Shown here piece by piece: positions 11,130-62,478 of a stretch of DNA of 64,000 nucleotides. Origin of the DNA: Geosiphon pyriformis uo1 (taxonomy: Eukaryota > Fungi > Glomeromycota). The stretch is taken from positions 186,001-250,000 of the forward strand of contig JAAOMT010000525.1 of assembly GCA_016748015.1 (NCBI GenBank), written 5' to 3'. A program made the translations under genes and the position numbers. Numbering within the stretch: the stretch's first letter is position 1; the number at the start of each line of letters is the position of its first letter. The notes beneath the pieces were generated by a model. The model ran no database searches, was not told the origin of the DNA, and saw only the letters and a list, made by a program, of their open reading frames with translations.

Positions 11130-12688
11130 TTGTCTTAAATTTCTTTAAAAAAGTTCATTTGAAATAGTTTTATGTGATTTTTGTCTTTTTTAGAGCTTTA
11201 AAAGTATTTAATAAGAAGCTAGCAATTAAGTTATATTTTTTTTTATTGTTGCTTAAATAGCCAAAAAAACCAAAATAGTTAAAAACAACTTTTTAAATTT
11301 TCTGTTATATTAAATAGCAATCTTTTTAAAATATTTAAAAATTTTTTTTCTGGTATTTTTGGTATTAGTTTTTTGTCTTAAAGCCAATTTTTTTATTTAT
11401 TTTTGTTATTTTGCCAATTTTGTATTATTTGTATCAATTATAATACTTAATTATATTATAGCTGAAAATAAAAATATGTTTGCTAATTTTAATTTGAATT
11501 AGCTTTTGATTATATTATTTAATATATTAATCTTTAACCAATTTTTTGCATATGTTTTTAATTAATAAATTTAATAAAAAACAAAAATTTTCTTAATTGA
11601 ATTAAGATTAAAAACCATTTAAAATGTTTTAAGCAATATTAAAATAGATTAAATAAAAAGTGAAACTGTATACTCTTCCTTTTTTTTGCCAAGTAAAATT
11701 TTTAAACAGTTTATTATAACTGAAAATACAGTTGTTTCTGGCAATACTTATTACTTTATCTACAATTTATATAAATTTATATATTGTGTTTAATAAAAAA
11801 ATGGTTTTGGTTGAAATGTGTTACCAAATAATTTAATTTAAAAAATGAATTGGCTGTTTACTACAAAGATATAATATTTTAATTTACATATGTTTTCTGA
11901 TTTTATTAGCATAAAGTCTGCTAATTTACACATATATTTAATAAAAGTTGTATATTGCTGTTTGCTAATAGCTATCAAAAAAAAACTATATAATAAGAGA
12001 TATTTTAGGGTATTGTGTTTGTTATATAATAAAATAGAGCTCTTGAATTATGTTTTTATTTGCTCTAAAAATATTAAAATTAATGAAAAGATACTGACAG
12101 AGTTCTTTAATATTTAGATATTTTTAATAAAAATTTGTACTTCTATTTTATCTGTTGTACTAAAAACTCTTTCCAGATATTTATTTAATATAAATTTACA
12201 TACTATAATTTGTAAAAAATTTGTGCTAAAAAAAAAAGTTTTAAAGATTATAATGGTTTTTAAAGACAAAAAAAAATTTTGATAACTATAATTACATTTT
12301 TAGAATGATTAATAGAAAATTATCACTTAAAAATACAACTTAATAAGTCTAAATATAGTATAAATATAGGGAAAACCAGTCTAGTAGATAATAGTAATAT
12401 AATATTTGATTTAACTATTAATATAATGAATAATTTGTTAGATAATATAATTTATTTTCTTAAGTCAACTAATCTTTTTACAGTTAGTTTTAATAAGCAC
12501 AAGCCATACTTGTTTTTTTTTGGTTTAAATAATAATATAAAAATATATATAAATATATAATATTGTGTTATTTAGTCTAAATAGCTGGCTATATGTAGTA
12601 AATACATAAATCATGTTTAATTTAAATTACTTAATTTGATTTTGTATATTAGATAATAATTGGGTTTTACTTGTTAAAATAAAAAAAA
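11130..12688 (+). mobile_element. AT-decayed LINE copy (RNase H to 3' UTR and A-tail)
   Basis: ORF 11890..12117 KKKLYNKRYFRVLCLLYNKIELLNYVFIC matches the zinc-finger region. 12560-12688 aligns to the 3' UTR of the intact copy and ends tgggttttacttgttaaaataaaaaaa. The 5' end is approximate. Confidence 0.8.
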
Positions 12689-17260: not shown

Positions 17261-18440
17261 TTTACTTAATTATAATATATTAAATAAAAATAAATATATT
17301 ATTGTTTAATAAATAATAATTAATTAATTAAATACAAGAAATTAATAAAAATTTACAAAATTTAATATTTTTAATAACTTAAATTAAAACCAAATTGAAT
17401 ATTAAAATAAAAATAGTTTATTATAAAAACTAATTTATAATTAGTTAAATATAAAAAAATAAACCAATAAAATAATACAAAAAATATAATTTTATTATTA
17501 TTATTATTTAATGAGTACAGTCCAGTCACTATTTAATATACAGATTTAAACATATATCAAACAATAATCTAATTTTTATATTAAATATTAATATAATTAT
17601 TATTATAAAATATAAAATTTTTAAGTTTACTATAATATTTTTTGAATTAATAGATATTTTATTTATTTTTTAGAAATAAATAAATAAAGTATTTAAACCA
17701 ATTAATACCAAAAAATCAATAGTTAAAAAATCAAAAAAAATTATTTATAATTTAAATTTAAGTTTTATTATTAAAAAACATAAAATAGACAATAAAAATT
17801 TATTTTTAATACAAATATATATTAATTATTATTGTTTAACAGTCATAAAAACACTTATTTTAACATAATTAAAAACATTTAAATTAAGATTATATTTAAT
17901 AAAACATATCTACTTTGTTTAGATATTTTTAAATATTTATTAATATTGATTTTATTATATATATATTTTTTTTTAATTATAATAAATTAATTAAAAAAAC
18001 TATTTTAACAATAATATTATTAATAAGTTTTATTACAATTTTATTACAAACTAATAGACTAAATTTTAATTAATATTATTATATTAAACTTAATAAAAGC
18101 TAATTTTATAGCTAATTTGAAAAAATTTATTAAAATTTATTTAATAATTATTTTTTAATTTATATATATGTTTATATATTTTAAATAAATATTTATAATT
18201 TGTGGTACTAATAACTTTTTTATAGTATAACAATGTTTTTCTGATGCTAATTTAAATATTATTAATGTTTATATAAATAAGTTTTTAAAAAACTTGAATA
18301 TATATAAGATAAGATATAGTACTCTTTCTTTTATTGATTCCTTGATCATAATGAGAGCATAGAGTAGTCAAAGAAATATCTTCCTTTTTCCTTATTCTCT
18401 TCTGTTCCCTTCAGTTATTTCTTTACATACACTTCTGTTC

Positions 18441-20404
18441 ATGACAATAGATCCAGTAGGCTCTTCTGCTGGTGGGTCAGCATCTGGTTTGGCTGGTGTG
18501 GGGACCCGTTCTGGCACTAAAAAGAAGGTGCGTGTTGAGAGTGTTTATGCTCGTGGTCCATCTTACAAGAAAGTGAAAAAACCTGATGATTCTGGTGTTG
18601 TTGTGGATTTGTTAGCTGGTTCTCTGCCTGTGGACATGCTACATGGTGGTGTTGACGACCAGAAGAAATCTTGGGGTAGTGAAATGAACAGCGAGGAATC
18701 AAGTGTTGGCGGGATTTCTGACATTGAGAACATGAAGAACACGATTGTGGAAGAAATGAGCTACGTCGATTCCGATGCTTCCGAGGATGATGAACTAATG
18801 GATAATGCTATACCAAAGGATTTGAGAATGAGAACGTACGTATTTGAACACCCGTCTAAGCAGCCTTCTTTCATTGATGTGGGTGGTGCTGGCGACGTTT
18901 TGGAGCTCCTTTCTTACATGTTCAATAGATCCAATCAGTTGCTGCCAGTCGCGTCACATGATTGGGAGATTCGGAGTTTTATTTCAGTGAAATTTTTTGC
19001 ATTGGATATTGAACTTTCTGCTGTTCCTGAGAAAACTGTTAGTGATAAGTTGATTTGTGTGAAAAAAATTTTTTATCAAGTTGATGGTTTTGGGGGGGCT
19101 TCAACTCCCTCAAAATTTCCAGGAATAATAAGGTCATCATTTACATCTGAAAAAAGTTTGATTAAGACAAAGGAAATAGCAATCAGTGAAAAAATTTTGG
19201 TAAATGATAATCTAAGAAAGTAAACAGCCATTCAGATCGGAAGGTGATCGTCAAAGAAATCCCAGTGGATCTTCTCAAATCGGCGATTGAGGCAGTGTTC
19301 TCCAAGTTTGGCAAGATTATTTCAATCAAAGTGCAGCTTATTGGTCTTTGACAAAAGGCCCTAGTGGAATATAAATCATCTGAGATAGCTGATTTGGTCG
19401 TGGCTAGATGGTCTGTGCTCATGGGAAAAGATTCCGTTCGCGTAGCAAAGGCAAGTGTTGATAAACAAACGTGAGTATCTAGAGATCAGCATCGGGCGTT
19501 GCTTTATACTCTTCCAGTTGGCACCACTGCCCATGATTTGTCTGTATTGGTGGAGGCCTATGGTGGGAAAACTTGTTTTATTGGCCATAATTCATCTTCA
19601 TATATTCGTAATCGGTGTGCTGTAATCTGTTTTGAGAGTGAGACATCTAAGTTGGCTGCTATTGGTTCGGTTCTGGTTTTCAAGAGTGTGAATTTGCATT
19701 GGGCTGATCTATCTTTGGCCTGTTGTGCAGTATGTAAACAATTCGGTCATGTTTCTGATGTTTGTTCTATGGGTGAGAATTCTGGTGCTCACAGTAAGCA
19801 GGTGGTAACTTCTCAGGATTGGGTTCGTCTGGCTAATGTATATAGGAGGAAACAGGCTTCTATCACTCACCCAGTTTTCTTTGGTGGCAAAACATGGGCC
19901 CAAGTTGCTAGTGGCACTTCTTTTTATGTGGTTTCTTCAGGTCTTTTTTCTGTTGGTGTTAGTTTCGGTGCAGGTTCTGCCTCGATAGAATCCTCCCCTT
20001 CTGATATCTTTGGTTTGTGCAGTTGGTTGGCAATTTTGGAATGCTCTTTGGAGCTTTTGGCAGACCGAGTTTCTGCCATTGCAAAGAAGCTGAGTTGTGT
20101 TAAGGTGGTATCTTCGAAGTCTTCTTCTCTAGCCTCTCATCCCATTGCGTCTACTTCTCTAGCCTCATGCATGGATTTGGATATAGTACTGGACGTTCTG
20201 TTGGTGGCTTCTCCTTCTTTTTGCCCTACCATTGATAATGCCAATCCTGATTTTGGTTCCAGTAGTTTGAAAGTTCTAACTGCCAAGGTTGGTGGTTTAA
20301 AGTCAAAGTTAATGGCTTTGGATGCATCAGTCGGCTCAGTGTTGGCAAGACTGAATATGTTGTGTTCTGGTTTGGGTTCTTTGGTTCTCTCGTCTTCTCA
20401 ATGA
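18441..20404 (+). pseudogene. LINE ORF1 (gag-like; RRM-like domains + CCHC zinc knuckle), disrupted
   Basis: RRM-like VIVKEIPVD...VFSKFGKIISIKVQL and LLYTLPVGTTAHDL...CAVICFES; CX2CX4HX4C knuckle CAVCKQFGHVSDVC. One frameshift near 19220 and in-frame TGA at 19349 and 19472. Confidence 0.88.
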
Positions 20405-23400
20405 CCGGTTTGATTTGAAAAGTTGCTACATGTAATGTTCGAGGCATAAACATTCCTGTGAAACAAGAAGATATAGTTTGTTGGCACAAGGACATTGGAA
20501 ATTTGGTTTCTATTTTTACTAAGACAAAGTTGAAGGATAAGGTTTGTCCCTAGATCACCAACAAGTTTGATGGTGTTCGGGTGTTTTCCTCTGGTTTGGA
20601 TTCTGGTTATCTGGGTGCTGGTATGGTGGTTGTTATGGACTCTTCTTTGGCAAGACATGTGTGTAGAGTTTCTGAAGTGCCTGGCCAGCTCTTGTCTGTT
20701 AGATTGCTTTTCAAGAATAAGCTCTCGGTGTTAATTCTAGGACTCTACGCTGGTGCTTCTTTGGTGGTGCGGTTTTCCCAGGCTGATGAGATTAACTCTC
20801 TTATTGCAAAGACTGTTAATAAATCTTCTTTTGTCATTCTCGGGGGTGATTTTAATGAAGACGGTTCTCATAAAAGTGCAAGTTTCAAAAGATGCTTTGA
20901 TTTGGGTCTGGTCAATTCTTTAGTTGGTAGCCCGGCTGCAAAAATGTTCACTTGAGAAAATTCTAGGAGTGTTACAAAAGTAATTAATTACATGTTTGTC
21001 TCCTCATGTTTTGTCAATGCAATAGTGCATCATAAGGTTTTGAATATCAGTGAGCATTTTGACACAGACCATCGAGCTGTTTCAGTGGATTTGGGTTTGG
21101 ATGGGCTTTTGAATACGCACTTGATTTCTCTTCGCAAGCAGGCGAATAGGGATTGTTGGAAGTTTGACATCAAAAATGCCAATGATGCTAGGTGGTTGGA
21201 GTTCAAGGATGCTTCAGCTGCTAATGTCTCTATGTTCTCAGATGTTTTTGAAGTGGCAGTGAGGTTTTCAGATGTGGACATTATGTGGGACATTGTTCGC
21301 AAGATCATGGTTCTTTCAGCGGGTGGTACATTCAAGAAAAAATGGTTCAAAGGTTTTGACGGCGTGTTTACCAGGACTTCTTCTAGGTTTCACAAACTGG
21401 AGCTGCTGGTTTCTAAGTTGGTTAAGGCCTCACATTTGGCTTCAAGTGATGGTTTTGCTTCTTTGTTAGAGATGTGGCACAGACTCAACTCTCCTGGTGC
21501 ATCAGAGGTTAAGTCTCTGTTTCTTTTAGGTTCTAATTTTGATATTATTTGTTCTGCACTAGCCAAAGCGAGAAAATTGTACCGCTCTTTGAAATTTTTG
21601 GAATCCAAGCATGCTGAAAAATCTTCAATCAAGCAGGCTATTAATAAAAGAATAGAGAGTTTTGAGCTAAACAAAGGTCACACCATTAGAAGTGTTTTGG
21701 AGTGTCTTTTTCACAAGGTGGTCCTAGATTATCTGGTTGTAGAAGAAGAGTTGATTTTGGAGCCCGATTTGGTTAAGTCCAAGGTGGACGAAATTATGGA
21801 GGGATGGACCAGAAAACATGAGGTGGTGTCTGACTTCTCTGAGGATTGGGTTCATCAATTTTGGCCTCTGGATTACGTGTTCGATAGTGCTTTCTCTGAT
21901 GTCATGTGCTCAATTAGTTTTAATGAGTTGTCAGCTGTTGTTAAAGATCTTCCTGATGGAAAAGCGGCTGGTCTTTCTGGTATCTCCAACGAATTGTGGA
22001 AACATTGTGACAAATCTATTTTGGATATGCTTTTGGTGCTCTTGAATTTCTGTCTGGTTGGCAAGTTGGTTCCTGGGCCTTGGAAGAAAGCTTGGGTTTC
22101 GATGATTCCTAAACCATATGAATGGGAGAGAGTTCTCACGAACACCCATCCTATAGCTTTAATTGAAATGGCCTGCAAGATTCTTTCCAAGATCCTTTCA
22201 GATAGGATCTCTTTGGCTTGCAGCACTTTTGATGTTCTTTGTAGAGACAATTTTTCAGTTTTGAAAGGTACGATGATGCAGTCTTCCATTTTTGCTGTTG
22301 GTTCTGTAGTTGAGAATGCCTTGGAGAAGAACCGTGAACTTTGGCTGGTTTTACAGGACATGTACAAGGCTTATGACTCAGTTAGTTGGGAACATCTTAG
22401 GAGGAGTTTGATTAGGATCAAAATATGTGACAGGTTTATTAGATTTTTTGGCAGCATTCACAATGGTCATGTCAACAGAGTGATGACTGACTTTGGTTTA
22501 ACTGATGGGTATTGTGTCTATGATGGGCTGGATCAGGGTGAAGTTTTCTTGTCTTTTCTCTAGCGTATTTTTTATGATTCACTTTTGTGCGAGGTCAAGA
22601 GGCAGGAGAGTGTGTGGGGCTATAGGTTGAATTCTCATTATGTTTCTAAAATAGGCCGAGTAGATCCTCATGCTGGATTGACTTCGTTTCTTGCTGCTGG
22701 TGCTTTCGTCAATGATACTATTTGGGTTGGTAGCAGCCAGACTGCTACACAACATATTCTGAATATTGCTAGTAAGTTTTTTAGGTTCAATAACATTTCT
22801 GTAAATAATGACAAGACAGTGGCCATTCCTATCAACTGTCAGGTGTTGGACTTTCGTTTAACTATCAGTGGCACGCCTATTTCCATTGCCAGGAAAGGAG
22901 AATCTCATTGCTATTTGGGTATTTTTTTGTCTTTTGGGGGTCTTTTGAAGCCTAGCTTGGCTAAAGTTCAGGCTGATGTACGGTTTTTTGTGAATCTTGT
23001 TTTGAGAAAGGCGATTTTAGACAAACAGTATACATATTTAGTGTCTGCAGTTCTTTTCCCTATTATCAGCTACAGGACTCAGTTCAGTTTTGTTTCTTTG
23101 AGTGTTTGTAGTAAATAGGACACTTTGGTATACAAGATCTTTAAGTTCAAGTCTGGGTTGCCATGTGATTTCCCCAGTGATGCTCTTCATTATCCCTTTC
23201 TGTACAATCTAAAGACTTTCGAACAAATCCAGGCTAAGAATAAATCGGCCTCCATTATTGCTTTTGCAAATTCCACTGGTGTCTTGGGTCGCTTGTTTTC
23301 ACATAGGTCTCATGACCTCCAGGTTCTCAGCTGGCATCCTTGTCATTCCTTAATGTTTCTGGTTTGTGTTGGTGTTAGTCTCTCAAATAATTTTTTGGCT

Positions 23401-25089
23401 GGTGTGGTCCGTATTTTTTCCGGGTGTGATTTGTCTTTGGGGGGCCCTCTGGCTTGTGCTTTTCATCGTTGGTATGGTACTTCTATGTCTTTGGTTCTAG
23501 GTGATTCCTGTTTTTTCAAGTGTGTTTCTTTGCTCAAGCGTTATGGGATTGCTTTTGTGGAACAGCTTCGTGACCGTAATGGTGATGTTTTTAGTTGGAA
23601 AACCTTCAAGTGTTGGAAGAGGCTGGACCCTCGTGGCCCAGTCCCTTTCTGGTTTGATCTCTCCGTTCGCTTTCTTGGTGGTGTTGTATCTCTCTTCTCA
23701 AGTTTCTTTTTGGTGGATGGTCATGCTGTGTCTAACATTTGTCTTTCTCATGATTTTGGTGTAGTTCATGATGCTTTGCCGACCGTTGGAACTGCCCGCC
23801 TTTTTGTGTATACAGATGGATCTCTTTTTGGTCTGGGCTCTGTTGACGTGAGGATGGGTGCTGCTGTTTTTTTTAAGGACATTAACTTGGGTTTGGGTGT
23901 TGGGATGTCTGGTTTGGTTTCTTCTACTCTAATGGAGCTGCAAGTCATAGCTTTGGCTCTTGAGTGTGTTCCTTTTTCTCGTTTGGTTGACTTGTTCTCA
24001 GATAGCCAAACTGCTTTAGATACGTATAGGTCGGAATTGTCACTGGCTCATCCGGATTTCAGGAACCACTATTGGATTGAATGTTGTCACATTACTATTG
24101 TCATTTGTCAGAAGAATTTGGATGTGAATTGGGTCAAGGTGAAGGGTCACTCAGGTGTCTCAGGCAATGATCGTGCTAATGCACTTGCTAAAAATGCTAT
24201 TCTCTCTGCTTGGCGCCTACCTTATTTAATCAGTGAACATTTTTTATGTGCTGGTGGTGTGGCAGTTTCTGGTAATTCTAGACACTTTGTTCGTAATGTT
24301 TTCCAGTCAGTTCATCAAGCTCGTTGGGAGGTTGGAGTGGGTTCTCGTGTCGTGAATAATAGGTTGCGTGCTGATATCAATTGGTCTAAGTCTTCTATGG
24401 TGTGGCACCCCGATTCTCACTTGGCATCCGGTTTTACCAGCATGCGCATGGCTAGCTGTCATACTTACTTTATGAAGGCTTTCCATCATCGGCTTTCTGT
24501 TGCTGTGCGCAAGCATTTGTATGATAGGAGATACCCCAGTGTGGTCTGTCTGTTCTGTGGTGATGTTAAGACCTTGGATCATGTCTTTTCGTGTCCTCAG
24601 GATGCCGTTGGTCATGCTCATATGTTGGGCACTCATGCTTCAGCTTGGAAGGCTCTTTCTGGCCTGTCTTGTTCTTCTTTTTGTGTCTTACAGACTTTGG
24701 CTTCTTGTGTTTCTGAAGTTAGAATTGGTGTTGCTCTGTATAAAGGCTTTGTTTTCGATGAGTGGTTTTGTGAATCTGTCTTGGTTTTTAATGATTCTGA
24801 TGAGGGTACTAAAAGGATTGTGAGCTTTGTGCATGGGTTCTGTCTTGCATTTCGGGATGACATTTGGTTGGTCTACGCCAGACACTGAGCATTTATGGAA
24901 AAGTGCGGTCTGATTCTGCATAACGGCTCCACTTTTGTTTCAGTTTCTGGTTTGTTTAAGGTGTTTTCGGCTGGTGTAGTTAAATTGCTGGGAGTGGCTG
25001 AGGCTTTTGGAGTTGGTTTCGGGTTTCATAGATTTTGTCCATTTTTTTCAGGTATTGGAGATTTGGTTTCTGTGCATATAGATGTATAG
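20401..25089 (+). pseudogene. LINE ORF2 polyprotein (APE endonuclease, reverse transcriptase, RNase H, C-terminal zinc finger), ~1560 codons with 6 in-frame stops
   Basis: APE motifs ATCNVRG, ILGGDFN, FDTDH; RT motifs KAAGLSG, PIALIE, QDMYKAYDSV, GLDQG, AFVND (DD mutated); RNase H motifs YTDGS, ELQVI, FSDS, VKGHSGVSGNDRA; zinc finger CLFC...HVFSC. All six-frame fragments from 20581 to 25089 lie in one frame. Confidence 0.95.
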
Positions 25090-28000
25090 TGTAGTCCTGA
25101 CTGGCCCAAGTGACTGGTCATGTGTAGAAAGCACATGATTTGCACCTAGTTTAGATCATTTGTATAATGTATAGCACTAGGTCGCATTTGGATCTCACTT
25201 GTTAAATAAAAAATAAAAAAATAAGATATAGTGTAACTGTATTTTTTGCCAACCTAAATCTAAGTATCAGTGTCAAAGTTGGTGGTTTAATGTTTTTTAT
25301 AATAACAAAATTACAGATAATTGCTTTGGCCTTAAAGTATGTTCTAGTTTCCAGTAATATTATAATATATTTAGATAGCTAAGCTGTTTTAAATGCTTGT
25401 ATTACAGAATTAGATATGACTTTATCAAACTTTTGCAATTATTATTGGCTTAAAAAACATTGTGTTATAAATTTTATTAAATATAAGAAGCTTACTATTT
25501 TCTGGGCCAAAATTAAAATCCATTTAAATATCTTGAATAATAAGTGTACTAATGTACTAGCTAATTTAGCATTGTGTTTAAATTTATTGTTTCCTTTTTT
25601 GTTAAGACAAAATATATCAAAACTAGTAAAATAACAATATTTAAAAATATTTATCATTTTATTTACAATATATTTAAAGTTATTTACTATATTTATTAAA
25701 AAATTGAATCTGAATCTAGTATTATTAATAAAAACATAATTAGAAATATAGATTGAGTTTAGATTTTATCAGTTTGGCATTTTAATTCATATATGACTTT
25801 CAGTTTTATAAATAGACTCATTGTTAGTTTGTATTCTTATTTTATAAAGGCTTTATATTATTGTTTGTCAATTATTATTTAAAAATACTTATATAATAGA
25901 AAATATCTCAATGTGTTGTATTTATATTGTAGAAAGATAAATTTTTTTAAATATTCTTTTATATATATTAAGAACTTTATTATTCATTTACATATGATTT
26001 AATAGAAATTTATATTGGGCTTGAACTTATTATTATTTTGTATTTTACAATTGTTTTTCTTATATGCTTTTAATAATACTGTCTATATTGCTTTGTGTAA
26101 AAGTTTTATGTTTAGAGAATATATATAGAAATTATTTTTGTTTTTAATTGCTTTAAAACTGCCAAAAAAAAATTGTCAAATTGGTATAAAGGTTGAAAAT
26201 AATTTATTGAACTAAGATGTAGTTGGTAAGAGTTAAATACAGAATAATTATAGAAAAAAAAAGTATGATTATATATAATAGTTTTGTGCCTCCAAAAATC
26301 TGTGAGTTTCCGACTTTGCTTTTTAATAGTGTTGTTAAGTTGCTTAGAATTGTAAAAATATATAGTGTTAGTTTTGGTTTTTATAAGCTTTACAGTTTTT
26401 TTTTTAGTACTAAGTATATGGTTTTTGTTATGATAGATTTATAATATTGTTCTAATTGGTCCAAGTAACTGGTTATATATAAAAAATACATGATTTGTGC
26501 TTAGTTTAGATTATTTAGTTTGATGTATTATGCTAGGTAATATTTGGGTTTTACTTATAAAATATTAATAAAAAAAATATTTATTACAAAATTTTTAGTT
26601 TTGTTTAAATTTAATTTAAATATAAACATAAATTTGATAATTTTATAAAATTATTTATTTAATAAAATAATTTTTTTTAAGAATTGTTAATAAATTAATA
26701 TTTAATATAAAAAACTTCATAAAATTAAGCACTATTTTTTTTAAGAAAAATAAAAGCAAAAAATTTCAAATTTTTATTAAACAAAAAAAATTAAGAATCT
26801 TATTATTATTACTTAAAGTATTAAAATTAGACTGTTTTACAAGTTTTTTTAACTTATAATATTAAGTATAAATTTTTTATAAAGTTATATTATATTTAAA
26901 TTTAAAATTACCCATTTTTTTATTAATAATAAAACTGGTTTTTTTATGTAAATATTTTTCATATTTAATGTTTATATCTTTATTAACACTATTATAATAA
27001 TTATTAACTTTATTATTTTAAAATAATAGTTTAAAACTTTTACTAATCTTAATTTTTATATTCAAAAATTTAGCAAAAAAACCCATAATTAATGTTTTAG
27101 TATTTAGTTTTCTAGTTTTTTTTTGCTTTGCCAAAAACATATACAAGAATATTTTTTTAATATTTAAATAAATTCCTATTTTATCTTTTTTTTAATTAAA
27201 GCAGTAAGAATAATATTTAATAAATTTAGCTTTACAAACAAAAATAATTTAAAAAAATAGTTTTACAAAAAAACTGAGTAGAAAAAAAAAGCAATAAATT
27301 ATTTCTTTAATAACTTTTTGTTCTCTTTATAAATAAAAAATTTATAAAAAAAAAAGTTTTAATATTTAAAAATAAAATAATAAATAAATAAAATTAAAAT
27401 AATTATTAATAAACAAAAAAAATAAAATTCATAAAATTTAAAACAGTAAATATTAATTTTAAAAAAAACATATAAAAAAATTTCAAAATTTTTTATAATA
27501 AAATATTGATTGCTATTTTTATTATAAAAAGAGCTTTAAAAATAATTCTGTTAAAAAAAACTAGAATTTGTTTTTTTTAGTTGTGGTTATAAAAATATGA
27601 GAAAAAAAAGTTAATAAGAACAATTATTAAAAAAATTTAGTTATTTAATTATTATTATTATTTTTTTAAAATAATATTTGGAAATTGTAAAATTCAATTT
27701 TTTTATCTTAATTATAGTATTTTAAAAAATTGATTTGTTTTTTTTTTTAAATTATTTTTAGCATTTTTTTCTAATTTTAAAGTATTTTTAAAAAAATTAA
27801 AGCTAAAACTTCTGACAAAAAATTGTAAATTTACCACAAAAAATTTAAAACTAAATTTAAACAATTAATTTGTAATTTATTTTGAAATAAAAAATTCATA
27901 ATCTTTATTTTAATTAATAATTTTGCAAATAATATTTACCATTTTTTTACTTGTTTAATTTGAAAATTTTGCTTAATTAAAATTTGGATAAATAGTTAAA

Positions 28001-34828: not shown

Positions 34829-35500
34829 CTAAAATGGTAATAATGTAGAGAACTCATTTTTTAGATTGAATTCACCTAGCTGGCTACATAATTCGACTTT
34901 ACTGTTGCTACCTCCGTTATTGCTTCCTCGATTGTTCTTGTTTTTACCTAAATTATTGTTGCCATTGAGATTGCCGTTACCAGAGCCAACGTTATTGTTA
35001 CCATTTTTATTGGAACCAAGGTTATTGTTACCATTCGAATTGCCATTATTGGCGTCAAGGTTATTGTTACCTTTGTATTTCCATTATTGGATCCAAGATT
35101 GTTGTTGCCGTTTCCATTGCCATTGTTGGGGCCTACATTGTTGTTACCATTAGCATTGCCATTGTTGCTGCCGACATTTCCATTTCCATTGCAGTTTCCA
35201 CTTCTATCACGTTTAATATGCTTAATAGCTTTTTCCAGAATATTAATAACTCTCCAGCCGTTATATGGTCTTGTTACCATTGTTATTGCCGTTAAATCCG
35301 CCTCCTACATTGTTGTTTCCGTTATTTTTACCATTCTGGCTGCCAATATTTCCGTTACCGTTATTGTTTCCGTTTCCTCCGAAAGCACGTTTATCCAAAC
35401 CAGGCGACCAAGTCCTTGGATCACCACCAATCAAACCATGATCTGCGAGCACCAGTGTGTTGGCAAACAAAATGCCAAGGCAAATGCTAGTTTTTGACAT
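34829..35500 (-). pseudogene. Secreted Asn/Gly 13-mer repeat protein, paralogue A (frameshifted)
   Basis: Signal peptide MSKTSICLGILFANTLVLA, then LDKR and NG repeats. Relative to paralogue B there are frameshifts near 35270 and 35072, and NG repeats continue in other frames to TAG at ~34829. Could be an assembly error or a real pseudogene. Confidence 0.75.
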
Positions 35501-35800
35501 TTTTAATTCTTTGAGTGTAAAAGATTTAGAATGTTTAATTTTAGAGCTAGAAACTTTTAGTTTCTGAATTGATTGTAGAAGAAAGAGAAGCTTTTCTTCT
35601 TGATGAGATGGGCGAAAATTTAACGGGAAAGCTTTACTTTTATAAGAAATCGTTATGTTAGTTTATGATATGTTTTTTTAGAGAAGCAGTTTTGAAAACT
35701 GTGGCTTCCTTTCTTCAAAATTCATTTTCGTTAAATTTGACTTTTCATCACTTATTTGGGTAATTTTGTGAGAACTCATATAATAAGCCCACCTGTTTTT

Positions 35801-36640
35801 NNNNNNNNNNNNNNNNNNNNNNNNNNNNNNNNNNNNNNNNNNNNNNNNNNNNNNNNNNNNNNNNNNNNNNNNNNNNNNNNNNNNNNNNNNNNNNNNNNNN
35901 NNNNNNNNNNNNNNNNNNNNNNNNNNNNNNNNNNNNNNNNNNNNNNNNNNNNNNNNNNNNNNNNNNNNNNNNNNNNNNNNNNNNNNNNNNNNNNNNNNNN
36001 NNNNNNNNNNNNNNNNNNNNNNNNNNNNNNNNNNNNNNNNNNNNNNNNNNNNNNNNNNNNNNNNNNNNNNNNNNNNNNNNNNNNNNNNNNNNNNNNNNNN
36101 NNNNNNNNNNNNNNNNNNNNNNNNNNNNNNNNNNNNNNNNNNNNNNNNNNNNNNNNNNNNNNNNNNNNNNNNNNNNNNNNNNNNNNNNNNNNNNNNNNNN
36201 NNNNNNNNNNNNNNNNNNNNNNNNNNNNNNNNNNNNNNNNNNNNNNNNNNNNNNNNNNNNNNNNNNNNNNNNNNNNNNNNNNNNNNNNNNNNNNNNNNNN
36301 NNNNNNNNNNNNNNNNNNNNNNNNNNNNNNNNNNNNNNNNNNNNNNNNNNNNNNNNNNNNNNNNNNNNNNNNNNNNNNNNNNNNNNNNNNNNNNNNNNNN
36401 NNNNNNNNNNNNNNNNNNNNNNNNNNNNNNNNNNNNNNNNNNNNNNNNNNNNNNNNNNNNNNNNNNNNNNNNNNNNNNNNNNNNNNNNNNNNNNNNNNNN
36501 NNNNNNNNNNNNNNNNNNNNNNNNNNNNNNNNNNNNNNNNNNNNNNNNNNNNNNNNNNNNNNNNNNNNNNNNNNNNNNNNNNNNNNNNNNNNNNNNNNNN
36601 NNNNNNNNNNNNNNNNNNNNNNNNNNNNNNNNNNNNNNNN
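35801..36640. other. Assembly gap (840 N)
   Basis: Run of n characters. Confidence 1.
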
Positions 36641-37669
36641 GGAGCCAAGGTTATTGTTACCATTAGCATTGCCATTATTGGCGCCAAGGTTATTGTTACC
36701 ATTTTTATTTCCATTATTGGATCCAAGATTGTTGTTGCCGTTTCCATTGCCATTGTTGGCGCCTACATTGTTGTTACCATTAGCATTGCCATTGTTGCTA
36801 CCGACATTTCCATTTCCATTGCCGTTACCACTTCCATCACGTTTATACAAATCACGTTTATACCAGTAAGATGGTCTATTGTTGTTACCATTGCTATTGC
36901 CATTAGATGAGCCGCGATTGTTGTTACCATTGTTATTGCCGTTAAATCCTCCTCCTAGATTGTTGTTTCCGTTATTGTTTCCATTGTTGCCGCCAATGTT
37001 TCCGTTACCGTTATTGTTTCCGTTACCTCCACGTTTATACTCATCACGTTTATACAAATCACGTTTTTCCTCCTCATCACGTTTATACAAACCACGTTTA
37101 TATTTACCCCAACGTTTTTCCTCCTCATCACGTTTATACCAGTAAGATGGTCTATTGTTGTTACCATTGCTATTGCCATTATATGAGCCAAGATTGTTGT
37201 TACCATTGCTATTGCCGTTAAATCCTCCTCCTAGATTGTTGTTTCCGTTATTGTTTCCATTGTTGCCGCCAATGTTTCCGTTACCATTATTGTTTCCGTT
37301 ACCTCCACGTTTATACTCATCACGTTTATATTTACCCCAACGTTTTTCTTCCTCATCACGTTTATACAAACCACGTTTATATTTACCCCAACGTTTTTCC
37401 TCCTCATCACGTTTATACCAGTAAGATGGTCTATTGTTGTTACCATTGCTATTGCCATTATATGAGCCAAGATTGTTGTTACCATTGCTATTGCCGTTAA
37501 ATCCTCCTCCTAAATTGTTGTTTCCGTTATTGTTTCCATTCTGGCTGCCAATGTTTCCGTTACCGTTATTGTTTCCGTTACCTCCGCGTTTATCCCAACG
37601 AGGAAATGGCTCTCCGAGCACCAGGGTGCTGACAAATAAAATGCTAAGGCAAATGCCAGTTTTTGACAT
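36641..37669 (-). CDS. Secreted Kex2-type-processed repeat polyprotein (paralogue B), 3' end lost in the gap
   Basis: Signal peptide MSKTGICLSILFVSTLVLG; 17 KR sites in 343 sequenced codons; three 57-aa Asn/Gly modules ending RPSYWY-KR (DNA period 276-279 bp); short spacers DEEE, WGKY, GLY, DEY, DLY; a fourth longer NG module runs into the gap. Confidence 0.92.
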
Positions 37670-37718
37670 TTTTAATTCTTTGAGTGTAAAAGATTTAGAA
37701 AGAGAAGCTTTTCTTCTT

Positions 37719-37761
37719 GATGAGATGGGTAAAAATTTAACGGGAAAGCTTTACTTTTATA
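37719..37761 (-). promoter_or_regulatory. Core promoter: TATAAAAG plus downstream TCATC (Inr-like)
   Basis: TATAAAAG on the minus strand at 37754-37761 and TCATC at 37719-37723. The same arrangement precedes the other three paralogues. Confidence 0.65.
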
Positions 37762-40639
37762 AGAAATTGTTTTGCTAGTAAATTATATGTTTTTTTAGAG
37801 AAACAGTTTTGAAAACTGTGGCTTCCTTTCTTCAAAATTCATTTTCGTTAAATTTGACTTTTCATCACTTATTTGAGTAATTTTGTGAGAACTCATATAA
37901 TAAGCCCACCTGTTTTTCCTCTAATAATAATAATGGAACAAAATGATTGATTATCTAAAATTTGAGATCCAAGCCCAGTTACTTGGCAAAAATCAACATG
38001 ACTGATAATCAATTCTCTCACAATAGTTTAGCCTGAAATTTATTTCTTCTTGATAATTTAAACCTACAAAAATTAAAGGTGGGCAAAGTCCATGATAATT
38101 AAGTTCTAGTTACAAAAAAGGATTCAGCGGTTAATACTTTAAAGGGAACCAAGCCATTTGATGACTTATTTTATTGATGATGATGATGACGGTTAATGGG
38201 CAAATCTTTTGATAATCCGCAGATCTTTTGATCTGATAAAAAAATTATTTAATTATTTACAGGCTTTTTGGTTGGGGAAGTTTTAACCCGAGAACATTTG
38301 GTTATTGACCCTATTTATTCTTCCAAATATATCTAATTTTGAGAAATTCAATCTTTTTTACTGCAGTTTTGAAAGCTAATTTTTGAGATATCCAATCGTT
38401 TTACGGCAGTTTTGATATATCGGCTGTAAAGCTTGAAAATAGGTTTAAAAGAAATTTTTCAGCGCGGCGAAACGAATCAAAAACTCCATATTGAAACTCA
38501 TCAAAATTAAAATTTAAAGGTGGCTTTTTCAAAATAATTGGCTTAGGCTTTTGAATAAAATTTAAGATGTTTTGATCTCGATGGATTGGATATCTTTAAA
38601 TATGAAAAATTTATTTTATTCCTAAAAGAAATTTTCTTTCATTCCACCATCTTTGATTTGGGGGATTGAAAAAAGAAAAGAGAGAACAATTCTTGAAAGA
38701 TAAAATTATTTCTCTTCCTTTCATAATTCGATTAATCTTCTTGGACAAAACCAGTTGATTAAATTTTTCACTGTTATAAAATTATCTTTTCTTGCAAAAT
38801 TGGGTTCATTTTCTTTCGAACAAAATTAATTAAATTACTAAAAAATATTGAACCAAGAAATTTTTTAATGAATTTTATGATCAGTCTCGTTTGACAATAT
38901 ATTATGCAAATATTTTTTAAAGAAATGTGGTTAGAACATTCCTATTCACATCTTTTGTTTCCCATTAAGAAGTCAGGGAAATAGTGAATACTTGATTTAT
39001 CAATTTGAGATTGTGAAAACTATAATTTTTTTTTCATTTTTTTTAGATCTCACATGTTCTTTGACTCATTAAAACCTCTCGCCAAATGTCTATACATACA
39101 AAAGTTAAGTCAAAATTAAATGAGATAATAATTAGTAAAGATGAGACAATGTAAATTTTCTTCTTGTGACAAGAAGTAGCCATGTCGTTCATTCAATTAA
39201 ATATTTCATTTAGTAGAAAATTAGGATTACATAATAAAAAATAGTCTTTGAATTATGACTTAAAAATACAAAGATTAGAAAAAATAGATTTTGTTTCGAA
39301 AAAAAGTAACTCCCTAAATGATCAAAGAATCAACTGGAAATGAACTGTAACATATAATTATTGCCAAAAAACATAGGTTTTCCATACATTTTAAACATAA
39401 TTTAAATGAAAGCGTTTCTTAAGGAGAGATTTCAGGTAATATATTAAATTTTTACCATGACGTTTCTTTATTTGTGAATTTTCGTTGATAGATACGTGTT
39501 TCTTATCATAAATCATTTAGACAAACATCATTAATTATAAAAATTTGGCATATATTAAATATATTTTATGACATTGATGAAGAGGCAATATATCACACTA
39601 TTTCAGCTATTTAATAATCTGTGTATTACTTCGTTTCATTTTTTTTAATCTAATAAAATATTTCTTTGAAAAAATTTTGAATTATGTGTTTTATCCTTTT
39701 TGAACATTTTAAATATAATTAAATATAATTAAATATAAATAATAAAAGTAAGTGAGATAATATTACATTTATTTTCATGATAATAAATGACTTTATAATA
39801 TATTTTTTTTTCTATTAATATAACTGAACTATTACTTTGAAGTATCCATTTTTATTAGAAATTTAAAATTTTTAGAGTGTCTATATATAATTTTTTCAAG
39901 GGGAAAAAACAAGAAGATATTTGAAACATTTAAAATCACCGAAATGACCTTTTTTTATACTTTTTTATACGGGAAATGGTCTTGAAAATAACATCATCAA
40001 CAATTTAAAAAATTATAGATTATACACAAAAGAGAATCCCATTTCTTTAAAAACCAAAGTATTCTTGTTCCCAAACCTAGGATCAAAATATAAACAATAG
40101 TCTGAACGGTTTGCAAAATTTCTTTATGGTGATAGCATGTTAAACTTTTTTGTTTACGAATCTTTATTTTAAAAAACGATAAATTAAATCGAAATTGAAT
40201 TTTGCATTTTACATTTTTTTGAAATTAAAACCAGTATAAAAAAAATATAACTATCTTTATTTAGATATATAATTTGAAAAGCTTGATTTTTTTTCTTTGA
40301 ATATCCAAAAATAAATGTTTTTTATTTGAAAAGAGAAAAGGCTTAATTTATTAACATTCTTACCATTTTTAAATTCGGTCTTTTTACCTTTACCTTTATT
40401 CAAACAAATCATACCTTATTTAACAATATTTAGATTAAATTTTTAGGGTGATGTGGTAAGTATGATTAGAAATCAAACATATTTTTTTATTTTTTTTGTT
40501 TAAATAATAAAATATCTTTATACCTTAATTATATAATTATTAGAAAGTTAGGGTGCATTTATTTTCAATTATAAGTAATAGAATCTAAAAATTTCGCCTT
40601 CCTAACTGCAAATTAATTTAATTAAAAATGTTTTATATT

Positions 40640-48600: not shown

Positions 48601-50017
48601 ACTAAGTGTAATCAAGCTGCTATCTACGCACATACAACAAGGAATATTATATAGTACAAGTTCACGCGGTTACAACGTGTGACCAGTCATAATTTCTTAA
48701 ATAAAATTAATAATATTTACAGTCCAATGTATTAGTTAAGAAAGAAGTAATATTTTATTCCGAATTAAATTGAGAAATATCAATAGAAATAAAAGATTGA
48801 AAAACTAATTTAACCTATGCATTTAAATTCTATTTAAATAAAAGCTTTTTAAATTCAAAATTCATTAATTTAGTTCCAAATTAATTTATGTCGAATAAAA
48901 AATATTTTTTTTCCAATTTTATTAATTTCGTTGAACAAATTAGAACATTTATTTGCTATTTAAACTTCTTGAATTTTTGTTGTTTAAAAGTTAACTTTTG
49001 AAAATTTTATATATAACGTGAAATTCAATACCTAATTTATTAACAATAGATGACTAAGTTAACCATTTTTTGATTAGTGTTTGTTCAATAAAATTAACTT
49101 TAACAATTATATATAAATATTGAACAAAGAACAAAATGTGTACCATTATAATCCTTAAAATTCTGGCCAAACGAAAAATGACAAAATTTACCAAAAAAGA
49201 TAAGGTCTTAAGTACGATAACCCAAAAACAATGTTTAATTTTAACTTATTGATTTATTTGCTATTTGTTTATTTTATCTTTGTTTTTTTTTAAGAATTGT
49301 ATTAAACGTAATAACTTATTTTAATTAAAAAATCTTTAAGTTTATTTACCTAAATTAAAATTTATATTGGTTTTAAGTTAGAATCATTTGAATAATAAAA
49401 GCCTAAAGCAGATTATCTGAATTACAATTAAAATTTTGTGATCAATCAAATCTATTCTCATTCAAAATCTTTATTTACAAATGTAACTAGTTTCTATTTT
49501 CTATAGCTGTTATAAACAAAGCCATTAATTTTGGTTAAAACAGATAATATAACAATTATTGCAGCATTTATGTAACATCTTTTTCTGTTTTGCGATTCTT
49601 GTTTCTCATTTTACAATGACAATCACTGATGACATATAACATAGGGAGTCTAGACTGGTGATACACAATTTTTGTTATCGCTAGGAAAGGGTTATTTCCG
49701 CAAGTTCGTAACACACATATATATTTTTGAATCTTTGTTTCCAAATAAAAATGTGCCCTTCATTATCGTGGATCTAAAAGTCAAGGATAAATCAATTTAA
49801 GGATAGCCGAAAAAAAAAATGGTAACTTTTTGGAAACTTCTTTAGATATTATTCTGAGTGGCACCGACTTCGATTTGAAAACTAAAATCTTGTACTCAGA
49901 TGGTTGCCAATTCAATATATAAGGGCGGTGCGTCTTTAACAGGCAAAAACGCCTTACTCAATATAATAAAAATTGTGTATAGTAATACATTTATTCCAAT
50001 CGTGAAGTGAAATAAAA

Positions 50018-51308
50018 ATGACCATAAAGGGTTTTATAGCTATTACAGCGTCTCTAATTCCTTTAATTATCTTAATTTTAATCTTTCCCAAACCCAAGAA
50101 TGATTCTTTTCCGGAACCAGACCCTTCGACAAGCACTGGATTTCCAACCTGGCATTCGAAAGTGAAAGGTACGCTCGCATATAATGGAAATTTAGATATT
50201 TTATTTGAAATAATCATGGAAAATTTTTTTAAAGAAATTTACCTAATATTCATTCAAAATCTCAGATTACGACCCTGAAAGGAAATATGCCAGCTATGCA
50301 TTCGCAATAATAATTGAATTATTTGGTGGTATCCTGGCTTTTAAATGGGCATTTAACAAGAACCAATCTCGACGAGTGAATTCCTACTTTTACAACGGCG
50401 TCACAGGGACGACAACAACTTCACTCTTCAATCAAGTTCTCGCTATCTACATATTGTTCACCGGATTGACCGCAATTTTTGCTTTGTTATTCGATATCGG
50501 GAAATTGTGGGAGAGTTCGGGCGTCTGGCATAACCTTTGGGAAGCGGCAATCTTGCTACTGCTTAAGGAAGGAGGCCGAATCAACAGGATTACAAAATAT
50601 ATTCTCACTCTTGGAATCTATCTATTTACCGTGCACAACATAACTCTTTTTATAGATTGGCCTCTAGATGCAGTCTTCTTCAAATTTCAAGGTAAGAACA
50701 CTAATAACTTTTTGAATTAAATCACTAAAAGAATCTCTCATTCACCTATTACGTCATCATATACAGGTCTCATATTCGATTTTGGCCAAGCGATTGTCTA
50801 CCCCATTATTTACTTTAACACAAGGAAACATGTGAGAGAAGAAGCAGAGACTCAACTTCCCTTCGAAAACGATGATGGTTTGCAAGAAGACCAGGAATAC
50901 GAACCAAAGCTCTATTCAGTTGATCATCCTAAACAACTTCTTTTATTAGTGGCTGCTTCATGGATTCATGTGCTTGGTAATTTAAGCGGTGCTGTTCTTG
51001 CTAATAATGGGACTGCGTAAGTGAAAAGAATTTTCTTTTGAATTTTATTTTCATTATGATATCTCATAGCTCAAAATATAACATTTTCCAATAGTGATCT
51101 CTTATTCCACGGGAGCTATGCCGTTACTTTTGCAATATATCCATTATATATTTTCTTGGATACGCATGGTGTTAGTGTTCTTCCGCAAAAAAGAATTTAT
51201 CTTTCAGAACCTGCAGCCTGGAAAACTGCCGTCATAATTATTTGGTCCACTTTCCTATCACTATTAACTATTAGATCTTTGGTCGTTGCTCCGGAACAAG
51301 GGGCCTAA
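50018..51308 (+). CDS. Multi-pass membrane protein of unknown function, 346 aa, 4 exons
   Basis: Exons 50018-50168, 50266-50691, 50767-51016 and 51095-51308 joined by GT-AG introns give an uninterrupted 1041-nt frame with about 8-9 hydrophobic segments. TATA-like tatataag at ~49916. Confidence 0.88.
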
Positions 51309-53594: not shown

Positions 53595-54170
53595 TTAGTG
53601 GACATATTTCTTTCCACTTTTCTTTCCACTTTTCTTTCCTTTATTACTGCCGTGATTAAAGTTTCCATTATTGTTACCATTATAGTATCCAACATTTTTG
53701 TTCCCGTTATTACTTCCATTATCATTCCCGACGTTAAAAAGTCCGTTGTTATTACCATTATACGATCCTGTATTTTTGTTTCCATTGTAATTACCATTAC
53801 TACTACCCTTATTTAAATCACCATTATTATTGCCGTTGAATGAACCTGCATTCTCATTTCCATTATAATTGCCATTGTTATTACCATAATTTAAATCACC
53901 ATTGTTATTTCCGTTATAATCTCCCTCATTACTATTCCCATTTTGATTTCCATTATTACTGCCAACATTTCCATCACCATTGTTATTTCCATTATAGTTG
54001 CCAGAATTGTTATTCCCATTTCCATTTCCATTGTTGTTGCCAACATTTCCATTACCGTTACCGTTACCATTACCGCTGCTTCCGTCACGTTTTTCGATGA
54101 ATACGATCGGCTGAGCCAGAACTAATGAGGAAGTGAGGAGTAAAAAGATGAGGCAGATAATTTTTTCCAT
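53595..54170 (-). CDS. Secreted Asn/Gly 13-mer repeat protein, paralogue C (191 aa)
   Basis: Signal peptide MEKIICLIFLLLTSSLVLA, propeptide ending EKR, 11 NGxxNGxxNxGxx repeats and a basic tail KGKKSGKKSGKKYVH. TATAAAAG at 54269-54276. Confidence 0.92.
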   Translation of the reverse strand: MEKIICLIFLLLTSSLVLAQPIVFIEKRDGSSGNGNGNGNGNVGNNNGNGNGNNNSGNYNGNNNGDGNVGSNNGNQNGNSNEGDYNGNNNGDLNYGNNNGNYNGNENAGSFNGNNNGDLNKGSSNGNYNGNKNTGSYNGNNNGLFNVGNDNGSNNGNKNVGYYNGNNNGNFNHGSNKGKKSGKKSGKKYVH

Positions 54171-55972: not shown

Positions 55973-56644
55973 TCAATAATTACCATTACCATTACCACTA
56001 CCATTATTATCTCCTTTATTAGCATTTCCATTATAGCCTCCATTGTCACTACCTACGTTCTTGATTCCATTAGTATTACCATTATAACTTCCCTTATTAC
56101 CGTTTCCATTTACAATTCCATTACGATCTCCGACATTATATATACCATTGATGTTGCCGTTATAACTTCCTTGATTGTAGTTTCCATTTAGAACTCCATT
56201 ATAATTTCCCTTATTATATATGCCATTGTCGTTGCCGTTATAACTTCCGACATTGTAGTTTCCATTTAGAATTCCATTATAATTTCCCTTATTATATATG
56301 CCATTGTTGTTGCCGTTAAAATCTCCCTTATTGACGTTTCCGTTTCCAACTCCATTATAATTTCCCCAATTAGCAATGCCATTGTTGTTGCCGTTATAAT
56401 CTCCCTTATTGGCGTTTCCATTAACGTTACCATTACCATTGCCATAATTTTCCACGCCATTACTGTTGCCATTGTGACTTCCTGTGTTTTCGTTTCCGTT
56501 TACGTTTCCATTACCACTGCCAACATTGCCATTGCCATTGCCATTTCCGTTATCATTGCTTCCTGAGGTGCTTCCTGAGGTTGGGTATCCGAAAACGAAG
56601 GAGGAACTGAGAAACAAGGTGATGAGAGTGATAAATTTCAACAT
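55973..56644 (-). CDS. Secreted Asn/Gly 13-mer repeat protein, paralogue D (223 aa)
   Basis: Signal peptide MLKFITLITLFLSSSFVFG, 14 full plus one partial NGxxNGxxNxGxx repeats, no KR site. TATAAAAG at 56798-56805. Confidence 0.92.
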   Translation of the reverse strand: MLKFITLITLFLSSSFVFGYPTSGSTSGSNDNGNGNGNGNVGSGNGNVNGNENTGSHNGNSNGVENYGNGNGNVNGNANKGDYNGNNNGIANWGNYNGVGNGNVNKGDFNGNNNGIYNKGNYNGILNGNYNVGSYNGNDNGIYNKGNYNGVLNGNYNQGSYNGNINGIYNVGDRNGIVNGNGNKGSYNGNTNGIKNVGSDNGGYNGNANKGDNNGSGNGNGNY

Positions 56645-60420: not shown

Positions 60421-62478
60421 AAACAAAAGGTCGTATTGAAAAATATTACCGATCTGATCAAAGCTTTATTTATGATTAATATTTCAAAAATTCATAAAGT
60501 TGAAAAGGAATTTTGACAATCCTAAAGTATTTGATTTTTTCAAGTTTTAGTTGTCTCAAACGACGTATCAAAATATCTTTTCTTTGAATTTATCCTTCTA
60601 GGAATGGAGTAAGCAGATATTGAAAATGTTTTTAGAAAATTTCTTTCTTTGACAAAAACCAAAAAGAGGTGAACGGCTTCTCTTGTGAATATGGATAAAT
60701 TATAACAGTGATCGTATAATAAGAAAATTGCTACATAGCGCATATTCCAATTCTGTCCTACTTACAAGTATCTTTGAAAAATTAGTAACAAAATTTAAAT
60801 CCTAATTCTAATCAACACTCTTATAGAACAGTGATCAAAAGGGAAAGTGAAAGTAATATTTTTTAAAATGAACAAACACAACTTGAGGGTATTTTATCAA
60901 TAGAAAACAATTCATAAACTTAAAAAACCCATTTTTAATTATAACGCGATCAACTTTTGATTGATGAATTCGGTGACTTTCAAAGTTTGTCCCTTCTGAT
61001 TATAAAATTTCAAGTTGGTCATAATCTTTACAAACTAATTTGTATTTTCATAATATATTTTCCAGATTTATGATTGATTTATGTATTTATAATAATTTAA
61101 ATATTCTCACTTAAAGATTTTATACATCTTTAATATTTTTTTTTAGTGGAATCTCAATTACTGAATTGATTATAATAATTGGTCAAGTTAAATAATCTTT
61201 AGATTGTTTATATATAGTGAGTGGATGCAAAATTACATAAAATCAATCATAAACAATTTTTTAATTGATTTATTGATTATTATTATTATTATTATTTATA
61301 ATTGAAATCTTTAACAAAACTGAAAATTTTCTAATTTTAATCATTAATGAATTAGTTTAAAGAAAAATTTATATATACTTTCAACAAATATAATTTTAGT
61401 ATTTTTAATAATAATATTTAAAAAATATGAAAATAATAATTGATTTTTTTCTTTTTAATAACATCAAATAAGCTATTAATATAAAGACATGAAAATTTTC
61501 AGAAATCAATATAAAAAACTTTTTTTTATTTGTTTAGATTTTCATGTGATCTAAAAGAAAAATTTTTAATAATCATAAATACAAGCTTAAATCATTTTTT
61601 TTTTATATTTTATTTAAAACCAAAAATACTATAAATATTTAATATTGAATATTCTAAAGATTTTCTTTGAAATTTTTTATGCATTAATTCTTTGTGTTAC
61701 TTTAAATTTTGAACTAAAAAAAGTCGATATCCGTCCAAAAATCTATCGTTATTTGCTTTTCAAGTGATGGTTACTTTTTGAAAATAAACAGAGTTAATTT
61801 TTTGAGAAACTGATCAATTGCGTGAAACATTTGAAAAAAAAAAAAGAGAAAAGAAAAGAAAAGAAAAGCAAAGCACATGATGATTTTAATACTTTTGAGC
61901 CCTATCTGCAGGAGATTAAGCCCCGAATTTACTTTTGTCTCATTCATGCATGTAGATGATTGATATTAAAATTGATGGTTACAGAGTCTATAAGAATCGT
62001 TCTATTGATCTTGAATCAATGATTGTAAGGAGTTCTCTATTTTTGCTTTGGCGTTTTTACTCAAAACAAGTAAAATAATAACTTTTTAAACGGTTTAAGA
62101 AAATCTCATTAGTAGTCTTAAACTGTTAATTTTAATGGTTAATGTTAATGTTGATGTTGGTTTTTTTGTTTTTGTTATGTTGCTCTTGTTGTTGTTGATT
62201 GAAAAATTGATAAAATTTTCAAGTATAAAAATCTTTTAAAAGGCTTACTATTAAATTCAGATCCCCTTCACACATAAAACTCTATTTATCCCTTTTATAA
62301 CGCGATATCTGAAAACCAGTTTTTTTTCAAAGGTTTTTTTATAGTGTCTTCAAATAAGTTGTTTTCATTCAATTTTATTTTTCGTAAAAAAAAAAACTCC
62401 CGTATTACGAAATCTTAAGAGTTTGAAATTTGATTGTTAAAATACTAATATTTTTTAAAATAAATTCATAGCTTCATA

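Follow-up and report, generated by a model that had tools for sequence, protein, structure and literature searches.

Gene B of Geosiphon pyriformis, a probable secreted Kex2-type precursor of Asn/Gly-rich repeat peptides

Described RIC proteins, KEPs and Rep1

Three proteins of Geosiphon pyriformis, GpRIC1, GpRIC2 and GpRIC3 (Schultz et al. 2022, PMC8786786; proteins from Hoffrichter 2018), are the described system closest to the gene considered here. They are secreted, Gly/Asn-rich proteins with an ER signal and with KR motifs proposed as Kex2 sites; Gly/Asn-rich proteins are linked there with amyloid behaviour, and the GpRIC-type proteins are classed as disordered. In the cDNA library they made up 22.3% (GpRIC1), 5.0% (GpRIC2) and 3.0% (GpRIC3) of the reads, an abundance that suits a structural product, and the lengths given are 456 aa for GpRIC2 and 470 aa for GpRIC3. 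The same source reports GpRIC3 and GpRIC2 as the best matches of Amlep_AGL4 and pabra_AGL2, respectively.

Two other systems are relevant for the way the protein would be processed. The KEPs are defined by an N-terminal signal peptide and by three or more repeats, each 8-100 aa long and placed between Kex2 sites (KR, KK, RK or RR) (Umemura 2020, PMC7329392), and they are common in Mucoromycota, with 9.15 per strain (PMC6339444, PMC7329392). Rep1 of Ustilago maydis is cut by Kex2 into ten peptides of 34-53 aa and one of 229 aa, which form a wall amyloid (PMC3133707).

Gene B lies in a 64,000-nucleotide stretch of contig JAAOMT010000525.1 of the G. pyriformis assembly GCA_016748015.1, hereafter the window, to which all coordinates refer unless a locus is named. 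It fits the RIC description, i.e., a G. pyriformis secreted Gly/Asn-rich repeat protein with KR motifs, and very probably belongs to that family. It shares with GpRIC1-3 the organism, the ER signal, the Gly/Asn richness, the KR/Kex2 sites and a suggested amyloid character, and its copy G (see below) fits the 470 aa of GpRIC3 modulo the 13-mer; it differs from them, as far as the available part of PMC8786786 describes them, in its 57-aa module tagged with RPSYWY, its multi-KR spacer cassette and its 13-residue coil. The signal-KR-13-mer layout of the gene B family is also that of Amlep_AGL4 and pabra_AGL2 (PMC8786786 supplement, by eye). A signal peptide, KR and the same 13-mer register were likewise recognized by eye in Amlep_AGL4/5 (Ambispora leptoticha) and Pabra_AGL1/2 (Paraglomus brasilianum); unlike gene B, these proteins have a single block or bare-KR joins, with the aromatic tag and the charged spacer cassette absent.

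As in the KEPs (Le Marquer 2019, PMC6339444; Umemura 2020, PMC7329392), a signal peptide precedes repeats placed between dibasic sites: gene B has a hydrophobic N-terminus and three 57-aa modules, each flanked by KR, and so falls under the definition above. The KEPs have mostly short signal- or toxin-like cores, whereas gene B has low-complexity internal repeats and a long uncut block. The original prediction, a Kex2-type secreted precursor, is supported as to class; its presentation as something undescribed is not, since the KR/Kex2 sites and amyloid-like character of GpRIC1-3 appear in PMC8786786. The gene class, the RIC family and the proposals of Kex2 cutting and of amyloid are already in print, and what is new from this locus is the module anatomy, the copy structure and the corrected gene models. 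The analogy with Rep1, proposed at the same time, holds for architecture only, several short peptides plus one long piece in both: gene B resembles Rep1 in having 57-aa modules and a terminal block (181-311 aa in its sister copies). The Rep1 repellents are amphipathic and make hyphae hydrophobic, whereas the gene B modules are polar (72-77% Asn+Gly) and include no amphipathic or hydrophobic peptides of the Rep1 kind; amyloid has been demonstrated for Rep1 and is a prediction for gene B. Sequence searches with gene B gave no Rep1-like match; they overlook relatives of low complexity, and missed even copy G at 97% identity.

Anatomy of gene B and of its copies

The translation of gene B (37669..36641, minus strand) was 343 aa long without a stop and ran into an assembly gap. 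Its parts are the following:

36641..37669, minus strand: gene B, ORF of 343 aa or more, cut short at its 3' side by the assembly gap
37613..37669, minus strand: signal peptide as predicted, aa 1-19, with the cleavage point placed by hydropathy
37586..37612, minus strand: pro-piece, aa 20-28, with the first KR at its end
37415..37585, minus strand: module 1, 57 aa, 72% Asn+Gly, 5.8 kDa, C-terminal RPSYWY
37307..37414, minus strand: spacer 1, 36 aa, KR-delimited DEEE, WGKY, GLY, DEEE, WGKY, DEY; 16 basic and 10 acidic residues
37136..37306, minus strand: module 2, 57 aa
37031..37135, minus strand: spacer 2, 35 aa, KR-delimited DEEE, WGKY, GLY, DEEE, DLY, DEY
36860..37030, minus strand: module 3, 57 aa
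36839..36859, minus strand: spacer 3, only 7 aa, KR-DLY-KR
36641..36838, minus strand: first 66 aa of the terminal block, 13-mers in perfect register
35801..36640, no strand: assembly gap, 840 N, containing the 3' end of gene B and part of the upstream region of copy A

The N-terminus was hydrophobic (best 10-aa Kyte-Doolittle mean 2.5), at the same position in all paralogues. KR pairs numbered 17, against 1.4 expected and a maximum of 7 among 10,000 shuffles, and splitting at KR leaves a 28-aa signal-plus-pro piece, the three modules, two spacers (36 and 35 aa), the short linker of 7 aa and the first 66 aa of block 4. As predicted, the KR sites after the signal peptide delimit three near-identical 57-aa modules (aa 29-85, 122-178 and 214-270), all ending in RPSYWY. 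Their pairwise identities were 55/57, 52/57 and 54/57, and the pairs differed by 5-8 nt each, with substitutions distinct for every module. A module consists of GG, three 13-mers, a 9-aa partial 13-mer and RPSYWY, with one extra Phe between 13-mers 2 and 3, of which the earlier wording, about four coils plus an aromatic C-terminal tag, gives a fair account. Gly makes up about 30% of the module and, besides the tag, there are 3-4 aliphatic or Phe residues. Block 4 begins with DGSGNGNG at aa 278, and the match that had been noted with paralogue C, which begins with DGSSGNGNG after its KR, was also found. Spacers 1 and 2 carry 26 charged residues within 35-36 aa, and Tyr stands directly before 12 of the 17 KR sites. 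Pro is absent from P1' at all of these sites; at P4, some of them have Leu or Trp and those before modules 2 and 3 have Glu, as against the reported aliphatic preference. No N-glycosylation sequon was present in B, F or G, though Asn accounts for about a third or more of the residues; paralogues C, D and E have one or two each.

The family around the window has seven members, A to G. Two of the loci named below overlap the window, L001 at its start (100% over 10,064 bases) and L002 at its end (100% over 11,522 bases). The copies and related features are:

34860..35500, minus strand: copy A, broken tandem paralogue downstream of B, in which the frame changes and reading from the start codon first meets a stop at codon 80
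53598..54170, minus strand: paralogue C, 190 aa, with signal peptide, one KR, eleven 13-mers and no spacers
55973..56644, minus strand: paralogue D, 223 aa, with signal peptide, fourteen 13-mers and zero KR
Locus L001, about 11625-12119: copy E, lying some 1.6 kb ahead of the window start; frame interrupted by a stop at codon 43
Locus L002, 12950-14023 and 14243-15733, plus strand: copies F and G, immediately beyond the window end, 97-98% identical to B
39241..39890, no strand: upstream block, found inverted before F/G, 96%; wider match 39241-40029 versus L002 11605-12407, 81-96%
Locus L004, 13711-15113, minus strand: family gene on another contig, with a 23-aa leader, identical 143-aa (11 x 13) modules on both sides of a gap, and bare KR joins

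Copy G is complete at 496 aa; it has two 57-aa modules and ends in a terminal block of 311 aa without KR. The terminal block of copy F has 181 aa, also without KR, and the 5' end of F falls in a 542-N gap. Residues 255-343 of gene B are identical to residues 163-251 of copy G, and therefore a terminal block of that kind very probably closes B as well. The spacer cassette of gene B is kept in F and G. The upstream block of copy A (35580-35800) is 95% like that of gene B (37697-37917). From the sequence comparison, B and F/G would represent either a recent inverted segmental duplication or a partial mis-assembly.

The copies also allowed a comparison of lengths with the published proteins. The layout of copy G minus two 13-mers gives 470 aa and that of gene B 458 or 471 aa, where the chance of a 470-aa match is about 1 in 13 per layout. 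By this length arithmetic, not by alignment to the cDNAs MH580277-MH580279, the B/F/G group may be the GpRIC3 group. With three 143-aa modules the L004 gene would have exactly 456 aa, the length of GpRIC2, and by the same arithmetic it is probably GpRIC2.

In the word-index search with the full protein, the closest match to gene B was Geosiphon G9A89_006371, on L001. In this public model, which corresponds to copy E, an intron sidesteps the codon-43 stop and unrelated upstream exons are added; model G9A89_006378 wrongly fuses copy F, by splicing, to an unrelated F-box gene (62476-63589). Other features were seen in the surroundings. A broken copy of protein P0004 lies at about L004 5700-6130 (minus strand), and a related pair of small genes with weak Ig-like (Big_7) matches is located 2-4 kb downstream of G (L002 17621-18059, minus strand, and 19432-20446, plus strand). 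In the window, positions 50006-51305 (plus strand) hold a multi-exon gene with several hydrophobic, probably membrane-spanning segments, the tested pieces of which had no significant Pfam match. Positions 18363-25220 form a GC-richer block of long ORF pieces broken by many stops, the tested pieces again without a Pfam match; we take this block to resemble the abundant LINE-type retroelement of the Geosiphon genome.

The 13-residue repeat and its predicted fold

The repeat unit is a 13-mer, N-G-N-x-N-G-N-x-N-[L/V/I]-G-x-x, whose register is unbroken through the 23 repeats of copy G and the 11-14 repeats of the divergent C and D. A profile search detected it in further proteins of Geosiphon and in numerous small proteins from elsewhere, the named ones being mostly bacterial (Mesorhizobium, Rhodopila, Bradyrhizobium). 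The fixed Asn/Gly columns were kept in 177 non-Geosiphon repeats, positions 2, 5, 6, 9 and 11 being imposed by the search pattern. Proteins P0002, P0005, P0018 and P0020-P0077 have the 13-mer in 2-9 copies; many of them are small, apparently secreted bacterial proteins and some are possibly of algal origin, with no Pfam family listed. Many of the 13-mer proteins from outside Geosiphon have signal-like N-termini, and the likeness of their repeat to that of Geosiphon may reflect homology or convergence.

Database searches returned little. Pfam gave no family for B, C, D, a single module or the terminal block, and a sequence search of the PDB with the family profile gave no match. In the ESM Atlas there was no usable match for the module, and C alone led to bacterial hypothetical clusters (score 0.78). 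The word-index search with the full gene B protein yielded a single Geosiphon paralogue plus one weak match, and that with the tag-plus-spacer region found nothing; searches of this type also missed the 97% identical copy G. Exact look-ups showed the B, C, D and G proteins to be absent from the collection searched.

A single-sequence AlphaFold2 model was unstructured (pLDDT 35). The second AlphaFold2 model, which had a 30-row in-register alignment as input, showed one beta-bridge per 13 residues, with a mean pLDDT of 57 (63-70 over residues 31-90) and a pTM of 0.39. Its leading structural neighbours were beta-helices and solenoids; the best Z, 7.0, was reached equally by an antifreeze protein, a fragment of an autotransporter and an acetyltransferase, and is too low to indicate anything beyond a common arrangement. 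Foldseek found no match for the model in the PDB, and the Atlas shape search found weak YadA and hexapeptide solenoids only. According to this model, which is of moderate confidence, the 13-mer is likely to be one coil of a narrow Asn-ladder beta-solenoid. AlphaFold2 over-predicts beta-solenoids for repeat sequences (PMC11795689), and this bias counts against the solenoid reading together with the low model scores given above; so does the Gly content of the module, which a disordered chain would suit as well. Gene B is like known beta-solenoid proteins (insect and ryegrass ice-binding proteins, YadA-type heads) in its predicted one coil per repeat, but it differs from them in a Z of 7 at most, no Pfam or PDB sequence match and no Thr ladder, and the likeness is generic. 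The curli and Fap amyloids are further comparisons of beta-solenoid type. Judging from the model, a solenoid or amyloid-like assembly of the gene B modules is plausible.

Processing, assembly and alternative readings

Kex2 cutting after Lys-Arg followed by Kex1 trimming is an established fungal route. Gene B is a genuine gene of G. pyriformis, the secreted precursor it encodes is probably cut into Asn/Gly-rich repeat peptides, and we give a probability of about 0.5 to a whole mechanism in which these are self-stacking solenoid peptides for a surface matrix. The precursor would enter the ER, Kex2 would cut it after Lys-Arg and Kex1 would trim the ends, leaving three modules of about 5.7 kDa and the long terminal block of repeats, along with a number of peptides of 3-4 residues. 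Each module would form four coils of the modelled Asn-ladder solenoid, and the short modules would stack by their ends, both on one another and on the long block, to build fibres or a film. We infer that the assembly would take place at the hyphal or bladder surface. The spacers would most simply be runs of duplicated cleavage sites, not solubility chaperones. A more specific proposal is doubtful, namely that the 13-mer is an undescribed Asn-ladder coil shared with secreted bacterial proteins, that the Kex2-released aromatic-capped modules and the long blocks co-assemble into a functional amyloid of the Nostoc-housing bladder or symbiosome wall, and that the Tyr/Trp tags cap or cross-link the fibre.

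The products could instead be soluble, disordered, water-binding, nitrogen-rich polypeptides, a hydrogel or nitrogen reserve of the wall, bladder or spore, and not ordered fibres. The Asn+Gly content of the modules and their near lack of hydrophobic residues agree with this, as do the unstructured single-sequence model, the great abundance of RIC-family transcripts and the disordered class assigned to GpRIC-type proteins in PMC8786786. A disordered store, however, has no need of a strict 13-residue register with an aliphatic position 10 recurring across divergent genes and phyla, and the same repeat is found in relatives lacking a nitrogen-fixing partner. We consider this alternative unlikely.

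A different question is whether the three-module layout of gene B is a partial assembly mosaic of near-identical copies, with a real module number other than three. The contigs of run X1 covered gene B and its upstream region, and those of runs X2 and X3 covered the coding region and a short leader only, with essentially nothing upstream of 37705; the latter coverage is suggestive of RNA, with run types guessed and copies that cross-map. No contig in the read sets examined spanned the whole gene, and the near-identical copies nearby and the gapped assembly make the count of three provisional. Moreover, the gaps remove the 3' end of B and the 5' end of F, and the inverted upstream block needs far more room than the 542-N gap of F offers. 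The distinct substitutions in each module speak against a mosaic, and so do the 5' letters specific to B (unlike G, A and E), which occurred in X2 contigs with zero differences. A mosaic is unlikely, and it would change the module count alone, leaving the nature of gene B unaffected. Run X2 includes G-type letters as well as these B-type 5' contigs without differences. The 5' end of F, lost in its gap, could be the source of the B-type X2 contigs.

The original prediction held that the charged spacers act as intramolecular solubility tags, parting aggregation-prone modules until Golgi cleavage. This part of it did not survive the comparison with the other family members and is now improbable. 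The charge density of spacers 1 and 2 is as such a function would have it, modules tagged with RPSYWY may aggregate more readily than untagged blocks, and some Kex2 pro-domains have been proposed as chaperones (PMC8528282). The longest blocks (181 and 311 aa), however, have no spacer, just the 7-aa linker ahead of them; C and D are without spacers; and bare KR joins the identical 143-aa modules of the L004 gene, as it does in pabra_AGL2. For a pure shield, furthermore, five or six internal KR sites would be superfluous. The idea could hold for the aromatic-tagged modules alone.

It is likewise improbable that the active parts are those bearing Tyr and Trp, i.e., the YWY tag and the tiny peptides WGKY, GLY, DEY and DLY, serving as oxidative cross-link sites or as signal or RiPP-type peptides. 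This reading would explain the Tyr preceding most KR sites and the spacer cassette retained in F and G, and the Rhizophagus KEP peptides are Tyr-rich and possibly cyclised (PMC6339444). But peptides of 3-4 residues are below the 8-aa KEP minimum, and the retention of the cassette reflects recent duplication, not selection, because the copies are 97-98% identical. No DUF3328 (UstYa) or tyrosinase match was found among the neighbouring ORF pieces scanned, an incomplete scan in which exons were taken apart and short ones could escape. Ice-binding or ice-nucleating beta-solenoids are very improbable: budworm and beetle antifreeze proteins and the ryegrass IBP are among the leading structural matches (Z 6.5-7.0; 29% identity to 3ult), but acyltransferase and adhesin beta-helices match equally well and the likeness is generic, the ryegrass identity is an effect of Asn/Gly composition, and zero Thr in any 57-aa module leaves no Thr-x-Thr ladder.

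For the self-stacking precursor, as the preferred reading, the significance lies in the RIC family. Its transcripts are reported to make up about 30% of the reads of a Geosiphon cDNA library. The defined 57-aa modules are easy to synthesise, so that the solenoid-amyloid question is directly testable for RIC products. If these products do form a solenoid amyloid, it would be a main structural material both of early-branching mycorrhizal fungi and of the fungus-cyanobacterium endosymbiosis, the only one known.
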